Source: Bugula neritina (lineage: Eukaryota; Animalia; Bryozoa). From it: a DNA stretch of 64,000 bases. Both the position numbers and the translations under genes were made by a program. Below the pieces are notes generated by a model. It worked only from the letters and a program-made list of their open reading frames with translations, had not been told where the DNA came from and did no database searches. The stretch spans positions 21,316,767 to 21,380,766 of the forward strand of contig OZ037766.1 in assembly GCA_964035545.1 (NCBI GenBank), written 5' to 3'. This document shows positions 49-12,870 of the stretch, one piece after another (within the stretch, counting starts at the first letter, position 1; each line of letters starts with the position of its first letter).

Positions 49-890
49 GAGGTACCAAAAAACTTTGGGTGATTGAAAAGATTACTAACGTTAAAGGAAG
101 GGAAGCACTTGTTAAATGGAAGGGGTACAGGTAAGTTGAATTGAGACCAGCAAGAATGATCATGGAGTATGAATAATTCTGCATTGAACTTTCATAATGA
201 TCCACTAGCAAAGTATAACACATGCATGCATACACAGACGATAGAGCTCGGTATAAAAATGTAAAATAGCTTACCCAATTTATTTGAGTATGCCATTTGT
301 TATCGTAAGATTGAAAATTAGTGGTTAAATTCATTTGACTAGAAGACTGTTTATTTGGAAGCATTGTGTAATTAGGTCATGTTTTTTTATAAACTGCATT
401 TTTTTTTACTTTTTGCTAGAAATTAGAACTTGCATGTAAGCAATGTCATAACATAAAATGTTAGACAAAAATTTAAATTACGGAGGGAGGTACAATGGAA
501 TGTCTTTGTAACTTGTCACAGATCTAGACCGATTTTTTTTTTCTTCAACTTCAGAAGTTTGGTGGGTGCTTTTGGTCTTCCAGTTTGAAAAAGTTGTTGT
601 TTATATTCTAGGACTCCAACCTGGGAGCCAATTACAAATGTGCGTCACACAGTGTTTTACAAACAGTTTATGGTAAGTGTACTACTTCAGCTGTTCACAT
701 TATCAATTAGTTGACTAGACACTTTTAAAATTAAAGTAGCATTTAGTTATACTATGCTGCAGCTTAACTAAGTAAACCGGTAACTGTTCATTTGTGATTT
801 AAAGATATCAACTGGGTGAAGTTGCATATTCCTTGTTGATTATTATTATTTCTTGTATTTTAGGGACAAGGATGCAGCAAAAGAACCTGA
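49..890 (+). CDS. 3' end of a gene encoding a C-terminal chromodomain (exons 49-130, 612-672, 864-890; 5' part outside window)
   Basis: Spliced in phase it reads ...YQKLWVIEKITNVKGREALVKWKGY-R-TPTWEPITNVRHTVFYKQFM-GQGCSKRT*, matching the chromodomain pattern (aromatic)-x-VEKI...LVKWKGY...TWEP..N. gtaagt donors at 131 and 673, ag acceptors at 610-611 and 862-863. Confidence 0.8.
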
Positions 891-1556
891 ACCTAAATAT
901 TTCATATTATATATATATATATATATTGTAAATAAACAAATAATTGTATGCCAAACAGTTTGATATTCTTTCAAGACAAAGGTGAAAGTTACCTTGCAAA
1001 TCAATTCTAGCCAACATAGGATGTGTTAAACATTACTTCAAATGTTGAATTAGAGCATATTATGGTTACAAAAATATTATAAGAGTAAAAAGTTCTTTTT
1101 TAGATTACAAAATTATTACAGGGCAGAACAAACTAGAAAACTGTATGCAATTTCTCATCTTTGGAATCGCTAATAACATTTAATACATGTTTGATAACAG
1201 ATTATGTGTATTCTGCCAGTCACACACACACATTAGTAAAAACTAGCTTTACAACTTTCAAAATTATTTTAATATAAAAACAACTACTAAAATGCAGCAA
1301 TAAGTATTGTGGAAAAAGGATAATTGGGTACTCATAAGCAAGTTTCATTAGCAACGACAGTACATCATGTGACTAAAAACAACCTGGAAGAAACTCGAAC
1401 ATATACAGTGTGCAAGCAAGCACAATCATAGGTATTTTTAAGCTAGACATAAAATTATTATTGAAGAGAGTTAGTTAAAATATAGCCTCACTCAGATAGA
1501 TAGTGGCTTGAAAAATATATCCAAAAACTATCAAAAAAGGTTTCAAGAAAAAAGCT

Positions 1557-4500
1557 TTAGTCTTCGTCAGATGAGTCAGAATAAATCGGCTGCAAGTCAT
1601 CATCATCTATAATTTCTTCACACTGGAAAACAAAATGAAGTATTTTTTAATCACCCCACGTTAGCCACTATACAAGTTTTGAAATAGATTATGGTACCAA
1701 AAATATTATAGTTATATTTCTACTGAAGATTAAAAAACACACACAACAGTTTCAAATAGTGCAATGTGTTATTAGTTTATCTTTTAAAGGATCCCTGGAA
1801 TGCGGTACTTATGCACTATTAAATATATATATGTATATATATATACATATATATACATATATATACATATATATATATATATATATATATATATGTATAT
1901 ATATGTACATATATATACATATATATATGTATATATATATATATATATATATATATATATATATATATATATATATATATATATATATATATATATATAT
2001 ATATATATATATATATATATATATATATGTATGTATATCAATTCAGCACATATACACATAAAATTTGTTGTAAAACAAAATTTAAATATTCTTATATATT
2101 ATATTAACGTTCATTTACATTTAGTCAGAGATCCTTCAACATACACAAATATAAAAAAAACTTTACAATCTAAGCTAAAGATTTGCCAACATTTAGATAC
2201 AACCTCTTGATCAGCACCAGAGAAGTTGGCATAACAAGACTTGAGAAAGGCTTGTTTAAATTGGGTGGAGATGGTGTCATCATTATGGTTACCATCACTT
2301 AAGGATGCTGCCATGCGTGCTACAAGAAATATATGGTGGCAACATTGACAGAAAACTGACATAGTGATGACATAAAAAGACAGTTTTGTCACAAGAATAG
2401 ATAGAATCGTAAATTGAGTTACACATGAAATTACAGACTGCAAAAAATTAAAACAACTGATTTTGGAAAATAGAAATATACAACTACTATACCTGCATAT
2501 TCAAGCAATTTTACGCGCTCTTCACCTAATATATCCAATTCTTCCACTGTTCTATTGTAGAGATGGTATGCATCGAACAGCTTCAGTAAATTGGGGGATA
2601 CAGAGAGCTTGATTTCCGAGCCTGTCCATGGAAAGATCATGGAGGTGGCTTGGTCAAAGTCTGTACGAGACAGGTCCGGGTGATTTTGCACATACTCATC
2701 AACAGCCTTTTGAAGCTTCAAATATGTCGCACGTCGTTTGCTCCGCAACCTGTCACGCCCCTTTGATGAGTCTAAATTATGAAACATATGAATGATAGTT
2801 GCCACTAAACATTTAAAGTTTTGAGCAACCGCAAAAAAAGCAAATTTGACTAAAAATAGGTACAGTAATGTGACGGACAACATTTCTCGCTACAGAAAAT
2901 AGGATGGGTCTCAGATGAAAACTTCCCAGTTAGATGCTATTTTTTATTTTGGTAAAAAAAATAAAATGAGATATATACACATGTTGCCTCCATAACAAAT
3001 TATCACAACACCGAACTAAAAATTAGAAAAGTTACAAGTTTGCCAACCTGCTAACTTGAGAATGTTTGCATCAAACCGCTGTATAGTGCAAGCTAAATCT
3101 TCCAATTTTCTTTGATCTGCAGTCAAATCTAATAATAGAAATATACAGTTTAGCGTTTATTCTGCTATGTATTGAACTAGCCTTATCATTACACCACATA
3201 GACATCTTATGACATACCACGTTTTACATACTGGGTTAACTCTTATTCTGATGTCTATTTGCCTAAACTCATTATATACAGTTTTTTGCCATACTAATAT
3301 TCTGTAATTTTTCATCTACATTTATTTTTAATGTCAGTTACCTGTTAGCTCCAATACGTTACAGTCATACATTCTACAATCTTAATTATATGTATATTTA
3401 ATCTTACTTGTCTAACAATATGGCAGGAGCACAACACATTCCACAACACAACACATTTAATTTAAAATTTGATCTCAAATTCCAAACAATTGATTTTTCG
3501 AAAAAATTGTGGATTACAAAACCGCAATCTCTGGAAAAAATTTAAGTTTTCAGGCTGTATCTTAAGCAGAGGTATTCTTGAAATATAACTGAATTTGATA
3601 AAGCAAACATTTATGAAGCTAAACAAATTAGGTCTGCTTAAACATCCCTATAGTAGCTATTATAAATATAAACAAAGAAGATTTGTTGATTTTCATAACG
3701 TATGATGGAGAAAATCTGATCCACTTGATAGAACAGTATAGATAAACATATATTCTATTAGATACGCAATCTAAAGGGTTTTAATCTGTCAAATTTGTGT
3801 GCAAATTAGATTACCTAACAATTTGCTGACTAACAACTAACCAACTCTATAAGAAAGCTTTACCTGGCGAGGAGGAGCAAATCCTCTCCATCACCTCTTC
3901 TATGCTGCTGGCCTCTGGAATTTCAGATTTCTTCAGCTCTACCATAGTGGCATGCCGTTTCGGCAGTTCCATTTCAATCTAATAATAATTAGTCATTTAA
4001 GAAACATAAATATCATCACATTTAAATATTCAACTCGATAATTCAATTTGTTTCAATAACTACTACTAAGCATGCATTATGCCAATGTACTTTTCTTCAA
4101 TGTTAATGCATAGAACGAAACCATAATAATAAGTTAATGCATACATTCTGCAGGCTTTAGCTACTTATGGATTTTCAGACGGTTTTTCATGATCATCCGA
4201 AAATCCAAATTAGGTAAAAAAACATTATCCACGAAAATTGAAAAGGATTAAAAAGAAACTTGATTATTTATTGACAATTTTTTAGTTTTGGTCAAAATCA
4301 ACAGCTGCAGTCTGAAAAATAGCTAAAAAATGAAGAATACTAAATAAATTACCATAATCGATTTAGCAACCACTGCAGTAAAATAAAAATAATATAATGC
4401 AACTAAATGGAAGAATGATGCTAAGCTATTATTTACTCCAATATTACAATGAAATTCCGAATGAAAAACCCTTTAAATATATAAATAAGACACTTTTAAA

Positions 4501-11108: not shown

Positions 11109-11415
11109 TGTTATGATTTTCAGAATTAGGGTTGATATGCAATCCAGAGAGTCTAATTACTTGCTAGAGAACTTCACCAGGATAAGTCGAGTGAACGACT
11201 ATATATTTTAAGTACAAGAACACATTACAAAAACGATACAAATACATTTAATAATTCCACACATGTAGACTACTCAACACTCTAACTTCGACTGACTAAC
11301 AGCGGGAAATTTACTACTGCTACTAACTACTAAAGTTGCTAATTGGCTGTCATTGTTCCGGGTCAATTACGCGACCCTGCGTATTGTGCTGCTGGTAGCT
11401 CCACGAGCCACCACA
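11109..11415 (-). mobile_element. solo LTR (307 bp) with 4-bp ATAT target-site duplication
   Basis: TGT...ACA termini, flanked by ATAT at 11105-11108 and 11416-11419; alignable end to end, in inverted orientation, with 22889-23193. Confidence 0.75.
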
Positions 11416-12764
11416 ATATCACTCTCACCATCGAACTCAATAATATTCCAGCTCAGTGACTCTCACTCTGACTCACACTCTAACTCTAAGTCTATCAGTA
11501 GCAGTATCACTACCAATATAGCTATAACTCTAAGTATTACTCAATCAGTTTCACTATGACCATGATAAAATCATAAAATGATGAATAATTCACTAATAGT
11601 GATAACAGTTACTGATTAGAGTGATTTTAAATTAGTAATCACAAATCTGCGTAATCAGTATAGCTGACTTATAGTTATACTTATACTTATAAGTTATAAT
11701 AGTAATACACTAATAGTAATACTAATAGTAATAGTTATACTTATAGTATTAGAACCTTATACTATGTCTATAGTCTATGACGGCATGACATACCCATAAA
11801 TGGTGATGTCTAAGTCCTACTTCAAAGTAGCAGTTAAACTTAAAGTTTGATATTCTACTCTGTATAACTCATTAACTGAGACTGAGTATTATACACCTTA
11901 CATGTCATGCTAAGTATCATTATGATTATCACTTGAGGTTTATGAGTATCACTTTCAGTAAGATACTCATACTATGGCTATGAGTTATACTCATAGTCAT
12001 ACCCCGATGCCCACACTTCTACTTCTAGTGATTTACTCCTATTCCTAGTTCTACGGGCAAGGCTACTCACTCATACTCATAGTCATAGTAACTGATAGTG
12101 TTGTAACTCAAACTAATACTATAACCAATGCCAAAAGACAAGGTAAAGCTAAAATCAGGAATAGAAACCAAAGGGTCATAAATCATATATGTAATGGTGT
12201 TTTAGTTTCTGTTTGTTTATTTTTTTCTTTTTTTTCTCTCCTGGCAGTAGCTAGCTATTGAGCTTTGAATCAAAGCATAATTAACTATATTCTTATCTCG
12301 TAGACAAAATGGTTTTCTTCCTTACTACTGATAATTTAAACAATTGTTCATACACCACTGCATCTCGATAAAGGAGCCAAAGCGCTCCGAGTGAGATTAA
12401 TTAGATGAGATGAGATGAGATGATGCTCATTTTATGTTTATGCTACCAAGTACCAACTCATCAGTCACTTAGTTTTATAGTGATGATTATACTTACACTT
12501 ATAGCCTACACCCTATAGCTTATTTAATTTTGACTCTACCTTGCCCTTTGGCATTGATTTAGTTTTAATTAAATTGTTATATTTAATGTTTTTCATGAAC
12601 TTTATGAAGTTTTATTGATAAGTTATCATATAGTAACACTAATAGTAATAGTGATAATTGTATCATAATGATGATATTGATATATAAAATATTATGACCA
12701 TCAATGTATCACTGTGAATGTAATAATTTTTATATAAGTAAATTGATTTACTATTAAATAAAAC

Positions 12765-12870
12765 TGGGTGTGACTAAAATGGGTGGCCACCTGGTGTCGC
12801 GGTCCGTGACACATATTTTAGTCATAAGGGGGGTTTTGACTAAAATGGGTGTCGCAAAATTTTTTAGTTG
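12765..12870 (-). mobile_element. candidate DNA-transposon terminus with repeated subterminal motifs (possible 5' end of the KDZ element)
   Basis: TGACTAAAAT(GGGTG) occurs twice directly (about 12771 and 12837) and once inverted (ATTTTAGTCA, about 12815). On the - strand the stretch begins TA|CAACTAAAAAATTTTGCGACACCC. No partner end in window. Confidence 0.4.

Follow-up and report, generated by a model that had tools for sequence, protein, structure and literature searches.

A 64,000-nucleotide stretch of the Bugula neritina genome (hereafter the window; GC content of its contig ~31%) contains a gene for a KDZ-superfamily transposase and, beside it, a gene ending in a chromodomain-like module. 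This raises the question of whether the two genes belong to one mobile element and, if so, what the second gene does there. A reading made from the letters of the window alone had proposed a single element of more than 12.9 kb that runs off the left edge. We found that both genes lie inside one very young 26-kb cut-and-paste DNA transposon of B. neritina. The window very probably holds the right part of a giant autonomous KDZ-superfamily element that is Zisupton-like by its 8-bp target-site duplication (TSD). The coordinates of all features are given in Table 1.

Boundaries, copies and nested repeats

The extent of the element was defined by BLAST of the extended region against its four other genomic copies. 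All five copies are collinear across window positions -12383 to 16216, and their flanks differ and are unrelated in each. The window copy starts at L009:7617 (G000:C2:21304383), 12,383 bp to the left of the window, and the element does run off the left edge as proposed, reaching 12.4 kb beyond it. This copy is 28.6 kb long, which leaves a basic unit of 26.1 kb once a private 2.5-kb insertion is subtracted; the five copies measure 26,098-32,468 bp. They sit on four chromosomes, their breakpoints are the same to the base, and the tips CAGT...ACTG are identical in all of them. Perfect 8-bp TSDs border four of the five (TTCAAATT, GTAAAACT, GTATATTT and CTCCAGTC), and inspection of the two ends of the C7 copy showed no TSD. 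The co-occurrence of both genes in multiple copies with shared ends, suggested as a check on the proposed element, was thus confirmed by these five near-identical copies. The two tips are short and nearly asymmetric: they share just CAGTnnATC (4-7 bases), the terminal 500 bp at the two ends have no 10-mer in common, and a longer terminal inverted repeat (TIR) or common subterminal motif is absent. Pairwise divergence among the copies is 0.08-0.54%, and shared substitutions pair the window copy with C7 and C8a with C8b. Because these differences form a tree-like series, we conclude that the element has made several very recent moves.

We also considered that the five copies are segmental duplications in which a domesticated KDZ host gene stands beside a host chromodomain gene. 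The C7 copy without a TSD and the near absence of inverted repeats at the tips would agree with this, but base-exact breakpoints in five copies on four chromosomes with unrelated flanks argue against it, as do the more than 30 sister elements (described below) that end at the same two tips, and the perfect TSDs in 4/5 copies contradict it. Since both flanks of the window copy are single-copy in the genome, we reject segmental duplication, which we consider extremely improbable.

Table 1. Features of the transposon copy in the window (unprefixed coordinates are window positions).
Feature	Position	Strand	Basis or remark
Right-hand 16.2 kb of window copy of transposon	1..16216		BLAST collinearity, tips, TSDs
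Chromodomain gene, exons 1-5 (left of window)	L010:6132-6234, 7831-7899, 8253-8371, 8741-8891, 9186-9629	+	GT-AG model
Exon 6, N-terminal half of chromodomain-like module	49..130	+	GT-AG model
Exon 7, C-terminal half of chromodomain-like module, with TWEP	612..672	+	In frame across canonical intron
Exon 8, last	864..890	+	GT-AG model; stop codon 888-890
Spacer between two converging stop codons, 666 bp	891..1556		3.6% divergence from L040
KDZ transposase gene, 15-exon model, 697 aa	1557..8960	-	Pfam on exon pieces, open GT-AG chain; ATG 8960, TAA stop 1559-1557
KDZ model exons 1-5	8960-8819, 8374-8297, 7759-7601, 7461-7366, 7117-6885	-	GT-AG chain
KDZ model exons 6-10	6300-6122, 6009-5919, 5746-5567, 5417-5271, 5017-4900	-	GT-AG chain
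KDZ model exons 11-15	4724-4633, 3978-3864, 2771-2493, 2319-2201, 1622-1557	-	GT-AG chain
(TA)n microsatellite in last KDZ intron	1780..2060		Length varies between copies
Solo terminal inverted repeat of unrelated DNA transposon family	12766..12877	+	Nested, fixed in 5/5 copies
Right arm, non-coding	13018..16216		94-98.7% identity with >26 sister-family elements that differ upstream of 13018
Trinucleotide-type satellite within right arm	14650..15300		9-15 bp periods
Right copy of 8-bp TSD TTCAAATT	16217..16224		Left copy at L009:7609-7616

The sequence-only reading had placed a terminus-like motif cluster ~3.9 kb upstream of the transposase ATG and taken 12765-12870 as the end of the element. 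The cluster is real, with a 14-mer that occurs three times at 12772-12851 (0 of 100 shuffles reach that number), and its start lies 3.8 kb from the ATG on the upstream side. However, it belongs to another transposon family. As an element terminus, 12766-12877 was ruled out: this is a TIR of an abundant unrelated family, nested inside the element and accompanied by ~140 bp of its family's interior, to 13017. Genome-wide, the ~112-bp repeat has at least 145 candidate matches, and many of these form inverted pairs 0.4-17 kb apart. An inverted copy of 12765-12870 was looked for at the left end and is absent there; the real tips are the CAGTnnATC ones. A 1.42-kb high-copy repeat is also nested in 5/5 copies. 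In all, ~15 kb of the unit consists of non-coding arms with nested fragments of other transposons and satellite, and a codon-bias scan of the element gave no further coding potential beyond the two genes and no helicase.

The transposase gene and the sister families

The transposase gene had been described as intact. It is indeed open in all five genomic copies, but it is not a single open reading frame: the gene is spliced from ~15 exons on the minus strand, in a GT-AG chain without internal stops. The model comes from a simple exon-chaining script, in which 13 exons are stable across settings and a few small ones are uncertain. Exon 5746-5567 matches the Pfam KDZ family (PF18758, positions 55-106) with 30.5 bits against a cut-off of 26.6, and the next two exons extend the match (positions 119-165 and 165-205). 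Upstream of this core, exon 7117-6885 matches CxC3 (PF18804) with 24.6 bits, below the cut-off of 26.6; precomputed annotation assigns PF18804 to relatives of this exon (66% and 38% identical). Candidate DDE motifs (DGN, D-x-x-C-Q and GE-x-x-E) can be picked out by reading the model, and the C-terminus is an acidic tail without a chromodomain. In a whole-genome scan for the KDZ family, the five copies score above the cut-off. The genome contains further KDZ lineages that have long open frames, and no other copy genome-wide matches the core exon of this lineage at the protein level.

An independent sample of the gene is provided by a JGI metagenome contig (L040), which has the same KDZ gene at 95.6% identity. 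L040 covers 14 of the KDZ exons; every one of them is open and retains its splice sites, and together they show 34 synonymous and 23 non-synonymous differences (dN/dS 0.18, p = 5e-10). When the frame is shifted, the counts become 5/48 and 6/47 synonymous/non-synonymous codons, so the selection signal is specific to the reading frame of the model. The predicted product is a KDZ DDE transposase of ~700 aa under purifying selection.

The arms and tips of the element are not unique to the 26-kb copies. More than 30 related elements of 17-20 kb have the same arms and the same two tips, without the chromodomain gene, and they are as young as the 26-kb copies. In their transposase region, no match was obtained at the protein level. 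The arms are 93-98.7% identical to those of sister family B, which is abundant and 18 kb long, versus only ~67% for the KDZ region, and the arms and the gene module therefore differ in history. The same contrast would fit a recent chimera, in which recombination placed a diverged module of KDZ and chromodomain genes between the arms of the 18-kb family (or the other way round) and the transposase that moves the unit has its gene elsewhere, with the further KDZ lineages as possible candidates. Set against such a chimera are the absence of any other genomic copy matching the core exon of this lineage and the KDZ gene itself, open in 5/5 copies and under purifying selection; we find it doubtful. 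In the mechanism that we favor, the KDZ transposase of the 26-kb element would cut at the CAGT tips and paste the whole 26 kb, and it would probably also move the >30 sister elements. Given the different histories of arms and gene module, this transposase may be, but need not be, the one recognising these ends.

The zinc-ribbon/chromodomain gene

The convergent arrangement of the two genes, with an estimated ~670 bp between them, holds up: the gap from stop to stop is 666 bp. The plus-strand gene, modelled by manual splice-site reading, has eight GT-AG exons that encode 351 aa with no internal stop. Its protein has two N-terminal CxxC...CxxC zinc ribbons (exon 2 gives a zinc-ribbon match), followed by a middle part, a variable PSTS-type repeat, a basic patch and, at the C-terminus as the sequence-only reading had it, a chromodomain-like module. 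The module is split by an intron, and the profile searches were run on each exon half separately, giving a match below the cut-off for one half and none for the other. Exon 6 alone matches Pfam Chromo (PF00385) at positions 6-26 with 14.1 bits (E 0.045; cut-off 25.1), and its sole PDB matches are CDYL chromodomains (E 0.55-0.86); exon 7 alone (20 aa) has no Pfam or PDB match. On our reading of the model, aromatics would occupy the three usual cage positions (W-x-I-E-K and K-W-K-G-Y): a W two residues ahead of I-E-K, and W and Y within K-W-K-G-Y, after which TWEP follows. The second gene is described here as a likely chromatin-reader gene.

The gene is intact in four of the five copies. The C5 copy has lost the start codon and has a 4,811-bp insertion in the intron before exon 8. 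Length changes in the repeat exon among copies are all multiples of 15 nt. Variable sites make up 1.07% of exons versus 0.71% of introns, a difference that is not significant, and we saw no selection signal among the copies. In L040, 17 of 17 residues of exon 7 are identical, and the 3' end of the gene adjoins KDZ there too. Elsewhere in the B. neritina genome we found three to four low-copy paralogs, outside the element and with the same exon order; no relatives were found in other organisms.

On balance, we think that the chromodomain gene is probably a passenger without a role in transposition. We regard it as captured in this lineage because it is carried by this transposon lineage alone, has low-copy paralogs and is absent from the >30 arm-sharing elements, that is, from the more numerous sister families. 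Its source may be a small host gene family, or the two may have a common origin, and the gene would ride in this lineage only. The lost start codon in C5 and the insertion of the window copy into single-copy DNA rather favor the same reading.

The principal alternative is that the protein is a working subunit of transposition, a chromatin tether or an anti-silencing factor. Its zinc ribbons would bind the transposase or element DNA and its chromodomain methylated histone tails, so that insertion would be steered to particular chromatin, or silencing escaped or exploited. In chromoviruses, which are Ty3/Gypsy retrotransposons, the integrase bears a chromodomain, and such a subunit would amount to a two-polypeptide version of that fusion. 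That chromodomains target retrotransposon integrases is established (Gao et al. 2008, as cited in PMC12477816). The open frame in 4/5 copies with in-frame repeat changes, the location within the mobile unit in all copies and beside KDZ in the independent sample, the aromatics and TWEP read at the expected places, and an adaptor-like succession of zinc ribbons, linker, basic patch and reader all agree with this alternative. Against it, the sister elements without the gene are equally young (yet this is compatible with supply in trans), paralogs with the same exon order persist outside the element, C5 lacks the ATG, the DNA around the window copy is unique and ordinary in composition, and there is neither a selection signal among copies nor a relative in other organisms. 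We therefore hold a working subunit to be unlikely, and its more specific form somewhat less likely still: a stand-alone histone-methyl reader recruited as second transposon subunit, which would tether the KDZ complex to marked chromatin or shield it from heterochromatin silencing, in trans for the >30 sisters. A targeting or anti-silencing role of the gene is speculation.

Comparison with known mobile elements

To our knowledge, most of what is known about the KDZ superfamily in animals comes from the original Zisupton of fish, which is described as having TIRs. Like Zisupton, the Bugula element combines a KDZ-type DDE transposase bearing an N-terminal cysteine cluster with an 8-bp TSD, cut-and-paste structure and recent activity in an animal. 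Unlike Zisupton, it is ~26 kb long with long non-coding arms, has CAGTnnATC tips instead of clear TIRs, and possesses a transposase gene of ~15 exons plus a second, separately encoded zinc-ribbon/chromodomain gene. Bohne et al. 2012 described Zisupton from fish (as cited in PMC12730594 and PMC12477816); TSDs are 8 bp in Zisupton and Dileera and 7 bp in Kyakuja (PMC12730594). With barely any inverted repeat, the Bugula tips resemble those of Kyakuja, which are CA..TG and lack TIRs (PMC12730594).

Giant cargo-carrying KDZ elements are already known from algae and fungi. For instance, Ectocarpus and Chlamydomonas have elements of ~30 kb that contain fixed nested insertions as well as accessory genes; those of Ectocarpus reach 30.3 kb, and one of 31.7 kb was seen transposing in Chlamydomonas (PMC12477816). 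The Bugula element shares with these giants a size >10 kb (26.1 kb), fixed nested foreign insertions, an extra gene beside the transposase and sister families with decayed transposase; it differs in its animal host and its chromatin-reader-like cargo. In fungi, KDZ, hAT, Harbinger and other transposons carry TET/JBP dioxygenase genes (PMC12730594). There too a DNA transposon bears a separate gene that plausibly acts epigenetically, and particular lineages gained such genes independently. The Bugula cargo, by contrast, resembles a reader, where the fungal cargo is an enzyme that modifies DNA; it is confined to a single lineage in one animal, and the host has paralogs of it. The Bugula family is complete and very young, its ends are defined to the base and its transposase is under selection. 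It divides clearly into five probably autonomous copies and >30 probably dependent elements, and it is a usable model for the mobilisation of 26-kb units.

The unusual part is the chromodomain passenger. We did not find a KDZ transposase paired with a separate chromatin-reader-like gene in the searchable literature, and PMC12477816 mentions chromodomains for Gypsy retrotransposons only, not for KDZ. As in chromoviruses, a chromodomain is tied to a mobile element, and the targeting idea is borrowed from them by analogy; unlike in chromoviruses, where the domain is fused to a retroelement enzyme, it is encoded by a separate convergent gene in a DNA transposon. If the gene is merely a captured host gene, the family would show cleanly how a giant DNA transposon captures and spreads a gene in an animal. 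A role in target choice or silencing evasion would make this the first cut-and-paste transposon to encode a chromatin reader as a separate protein, and a second subunit would be the split, DNA-transposon counterpart of chromoviral integrase targeting.

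Boundaries, copies and mobility of the element

A single large element that carries both the KDZ transposase gene and the chromodomain gene is the supported core of the sequence-only reading, which had placed the two genes in one unit of more than 12.9 kb. The window (G000:C2:21316767-21380766) is AT-rich, with a GC content of about 31%. Five copies of its first 1.5 kb occur in the 216,009,554-bp assembly, at 98-100% identity; nearly all matches in the assembly fall on the large contigs C1-C9. We fetched 40-50 kb around each of the five copies (the window copy on C2, one each on C5 and C7, and two on C8, C8a and C8b) and compared them. 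All five are colinear between the same two points (see the table), with unrelated sequence outside both, and every copy starts with CAGTATATC and ends with GATGCACTG. Perfect 8-bp TSDs flank four of the five: TTCAAATT at the window copy, and GTAAAACT, GTATATTT and CTCCAGTC. The C7 copy lacks a TSD (GAAGTGCT before, GCCGTGTA after), despite being only 21 substitutions apart from the window copy. The proposed multi-gene unit is therefore borne out by five colinear copies with identical tips, TSDs in four of them and both genes within each. Published TSD lengths are 8 bp for both Zisupton and Dileera and 7 bp for Kyakuja (PMC12730594).

The left and right flanks of the window copy are each single-copy in the assembly. 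We considered that the copies might have arisen by segmental duplication and rejected this because of the TSDs and the single-copy flanks. No empty allele of the window insertion is present in the assembly, and insertion of this copy into an obvious exon was rejected. The two tips have only CAGTnnATC in common; no longer inverted repeat or shared subterminal word was found at the element ends.

Three copies are 26,098-26,133 bp long. The other two are longer through private insertions: the window copy (28,600 bp) carries one of 2,541 bp, situated 8.7-11.3 kb left of the window, and the C5 copy (32,468 bp) carries two, of 1,175 and 4,811 bp. Substitution divergence among the five copies is 0.08-0.54%. 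A tree of shared substitutions groups the window copy with C7 and C8a with C8b, with C5 apart, and each copy carries only 2-58 private changes per 25.7 kb. This branching order and the few private changes indicate several successive, very recent transpositions.

Features of the 26-kb KDZ element and related loci (window positions unless a contig or a fetched genome locus, L009-L014 or L023-L027, is named; negative positions lie left of base 1)
Feature	Location	Description
Element, window copy	-12383 to 16216	colinear in 5/5 copies
Element, C7 copy	G000:C7:12121255-12147360 (L011-L014)	no TSD
Left arm		about 8.5 kb; holds the 1.42-kb repeat
Private insertion, window copy only	L009:8739 to L010:1279 (window -11261 to -8721)	2,541 bp
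1.42-kb high-copy repeat	L010:1973-3394 (window -8027 to -6606)	at least 35 genomic copies, 82-94% identity; fixed in 5/5 copies
Zinc-ribbon/chromodomain gene (+)	ATG 3,868 bp left of the window; stop 888-890	eight exons
KDZ gene (-)	ATG 8960; TAA 1559-1557	697 aa in the 15-exon version
Right arm		about 7.3 kb; holds a solo TIR fragment and a satellite with a 9-15-bp period
Solo TIR fragment	12766-13017	one TIR arm (12766-12877) and about 140 bp of interior only; truncated at 13017; fixed in 5/5 copies
C5 private insertion 1	L023-L027	1,175 bp, MITE-like; inverted tips CAGGGTTGGGG, 8-bp TSD GTAACAAC
C5 private insertion 2	L023-L027	4,811-bp element, within the final intron of the chromodomain gene
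Chromodomain-gene paralogs	C3:18.36 Mb, C3:18.51 Mb, C3:21.05 Mb	the C3:18.51 Mb paralog has a near-twin on C298
(TA)n tract	42454-43982	1.5 kb, degenerate

The KDZ transposase gene

The stretch from 2.9 to 10.9 kb has no long ORF. On the minus strand, short open pieces match the Pfam KDZ profile in order (profile positions 55-106, at 30.5 bits and above the cut-off, then 119-165 and 165-205), and a piece upstream of them matches CxC3. The ordered short matches, together with the lack of a long ORF, indicate that the KDZ gene is spliced. We modeled it with a codon-bias exon-chaining script, which gave 13-18 exons depending on the intron penalty; chaining by maximal open length was rejected because it drew in intron translation. 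The stop codons of the KDZ and chromodomain genes are separated by 666 bp, and the convergent anatomy proposed earlier holds as two spliced models on opposite strands. None of the five copies interrupts the 15-exon KDZ frame; they show 1-2 amino-acid differences and, in one copy, a 3-nt in-frame insertion. Variable sites make up 0.19% of KDZ exons vs 0.42% of introns among the five copies (p 0.19), which are too alike for a selection test.

A more distant relative emerged when the CxC3 exon was used for an exhaustive protein search, which retrieved only 23 relatives, all exon-sized fragments of 82-181 aa. The best match led to L040, an 8,073-bp contig from JGI metagenome 3300002729. This contig is the same element from window position 8725 to 622, with 95.6% identity over 8725-1982 and 92.4% over 1878-622. 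The 14 KDZ exons that it covers are equal in length, one in-frame insertion of 9 nt aside; every splice dinucleotide is retained and the frame is open. There are 34 synonymous and 23 non-synonymous differences (dS 0.086, dN 0.015, dN/dS 0.18, p 5e-10), and 35 of 57 differences fall at third codon positions. In the two shifted frames, the synonymous/non-synonymous codon counts become 5/48 and 6/47. At the sequence level, this comparison shows that the predicted exon model is valid and that the putative transposase is under purifying selection. L040 also includes the 666-bp spacer and the final two chromodomain-gene exons, and thus the tail-to-tail pair exists in an independent sample.

The dS between the KDZ gene (window 1557-8725) and L040 is well above the intron divergence of 3.15%. 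Two other metagenome contigs, L041 (18.4 kb, JGI 3300002729) and L042 (9.7 kb, JGI 3300003318), represent a second, more distant KDZ lineage with 66% identity in the CxC3 exon; no relative of the chromodomain gene was found on either.

The zinc-ribbon/chromodomain gene and known KDZ elements

The eight exons of the plus-strand gene have canonical GT-AG sites and join in one frame of 351 aa that no stop interrupts. One CxxC...CxxC pair is encoded by exon 1 and another by exon 2; the matches of exon 2 to zinc-ribbon profiles (E 6e-4 to 3e-3) stay under the cut-offs of those profiles. Exons 3-4 gave no match in the profile search, and an Atlas look-alike search with exon 4 found nothing above 0.87. 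In exon 5, a 15-nt (five-residue) PSTS-type repeat precedes a basic patch. We read exons 6-7 as a candidate short-loop chromodomain, for which the lines of evidence agree but are weak: the sole profile match of exon 6 is Pfam Chromo (E 0.045), its only two PDB matches are both CDYL chromodomains (E 0.55-0.86), and exon 7 by itself is too short to be scored.

Four of the five copies keep the gene intact. In the C5 copy, a 29-bp deletion took the ATG, and 4.8 kb are inserted in the last intron. Between copies, the length of the repeat exon changes only by multiples of 15 nt, from -15 to +435. At the DNA level the gene occurs genome-wide only in the five element copies. At the protein level, colinear paralogs (exons 3, 4 and 6) with 54-71% identity, mostly without stops, lie at three loci on C3 (see the table); by the hit tables from which we characterized these loci and the sister families described below, none is located within a sister element or close to any KDZ match. 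No relatives turned up when metagenome contigs were scanned with exons 4 and 3, and a word search of the protein collection with the long C5 repeat exon returned one spurious match and no relative. That the protein might guide insertion or counter silencing, as proposed earlier, is speculation.

Giant KDZ elements of about 30 kb, with fixed nested insertions, accessory genes and pseudogenized relatives, are described from Ectocarpus and Chlamydomonas (PMC12477816), and in fungi KDZ and other transposons carry TET/JBP genes (PMC12730594). Full-text literature searches returned no paper describing Zisupton, KDZ or Kyakuja paired with a chromodomain. The KDZ element with a chromodomain gene is a variant of this already known giant type.

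Sister families and nested repeats

The left 1,050 bp of the element match about 18 further places at 92-94% identity and about 12 more at 77-78%, and the right arm from 13018 matches more than 26 further places. Pairing of these arm coordinates yields sister elements of 17-20 kb, whose copies share, upstream of 13018, a common sequence unrelated to the 26-kb element. Seven sampled sister copies are 0.1-0.9% apart from one another (one outlier about 3%), so they are as young as the five 26-kb copies. The same seven differ from the arm of the 26-kb element by only 1.1-1.8%, whereas the sister KDZ region has about 67% DNA identity to it. This mismatch suggests that arms and gene module may have recombined. 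No sister element showed a protein-level match to the KDZ core exon (20 candidates scored, only the five copies passing), and the whole-genome Pfam KDZ scan found no match in them. From these comparisons we infer that the sister elements are non-autonomous and would depend on the five intact copies for their movement.

Scanned on both strands by codon log-odds, the element showed no coding potential over its full length beyond the two genes, except repeat artefacts; a third gene or helicase in the arms was rejected on this basis. The left arm has no tRNA genes. The private 2,541-bp insertion is a different DNA transposon, which landed after the 26-kb element had inserted here; it has inverted tips of about 20 bp beginning CACAGTT.

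The motif cluster at 12765-12870, previously taken as the element terminus, proved to be the roughly 112-bp terminal repeat of another, abundant family. In 12766-12877 a 14-mer occurs twice in direct and once in inverted orientation (0.46 matches expected by chance). Candidate genomic matches to the 121-bp segment number at least 145, at 87-93% identity, many of them forming inverted pairs spaced 0.4, 0.7, 1.2, 1.7, 2.3 or 17 kb apart. This inverted pairing of abundant matches identifies the cluster as a TIR from a different DNA transposon family, nested as a fragment in the KDZ element and not an end of it.

One paralog of the chromodomain gene is about 3 kb away from the best non-self match of the roughly 112-bp repeat (C3:18364696-18364816). 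Elsewhere in the window, GC falls to 8% in the 2-kb bin of the (TA)n tract. Pairs of the repeat 0.4-2.3 kb apart are MITE-sized; those about 17 kb apart (G000:C4:22596145/22613366 and C3:24770687/24787916) possibly represent another giant DNA transposon.
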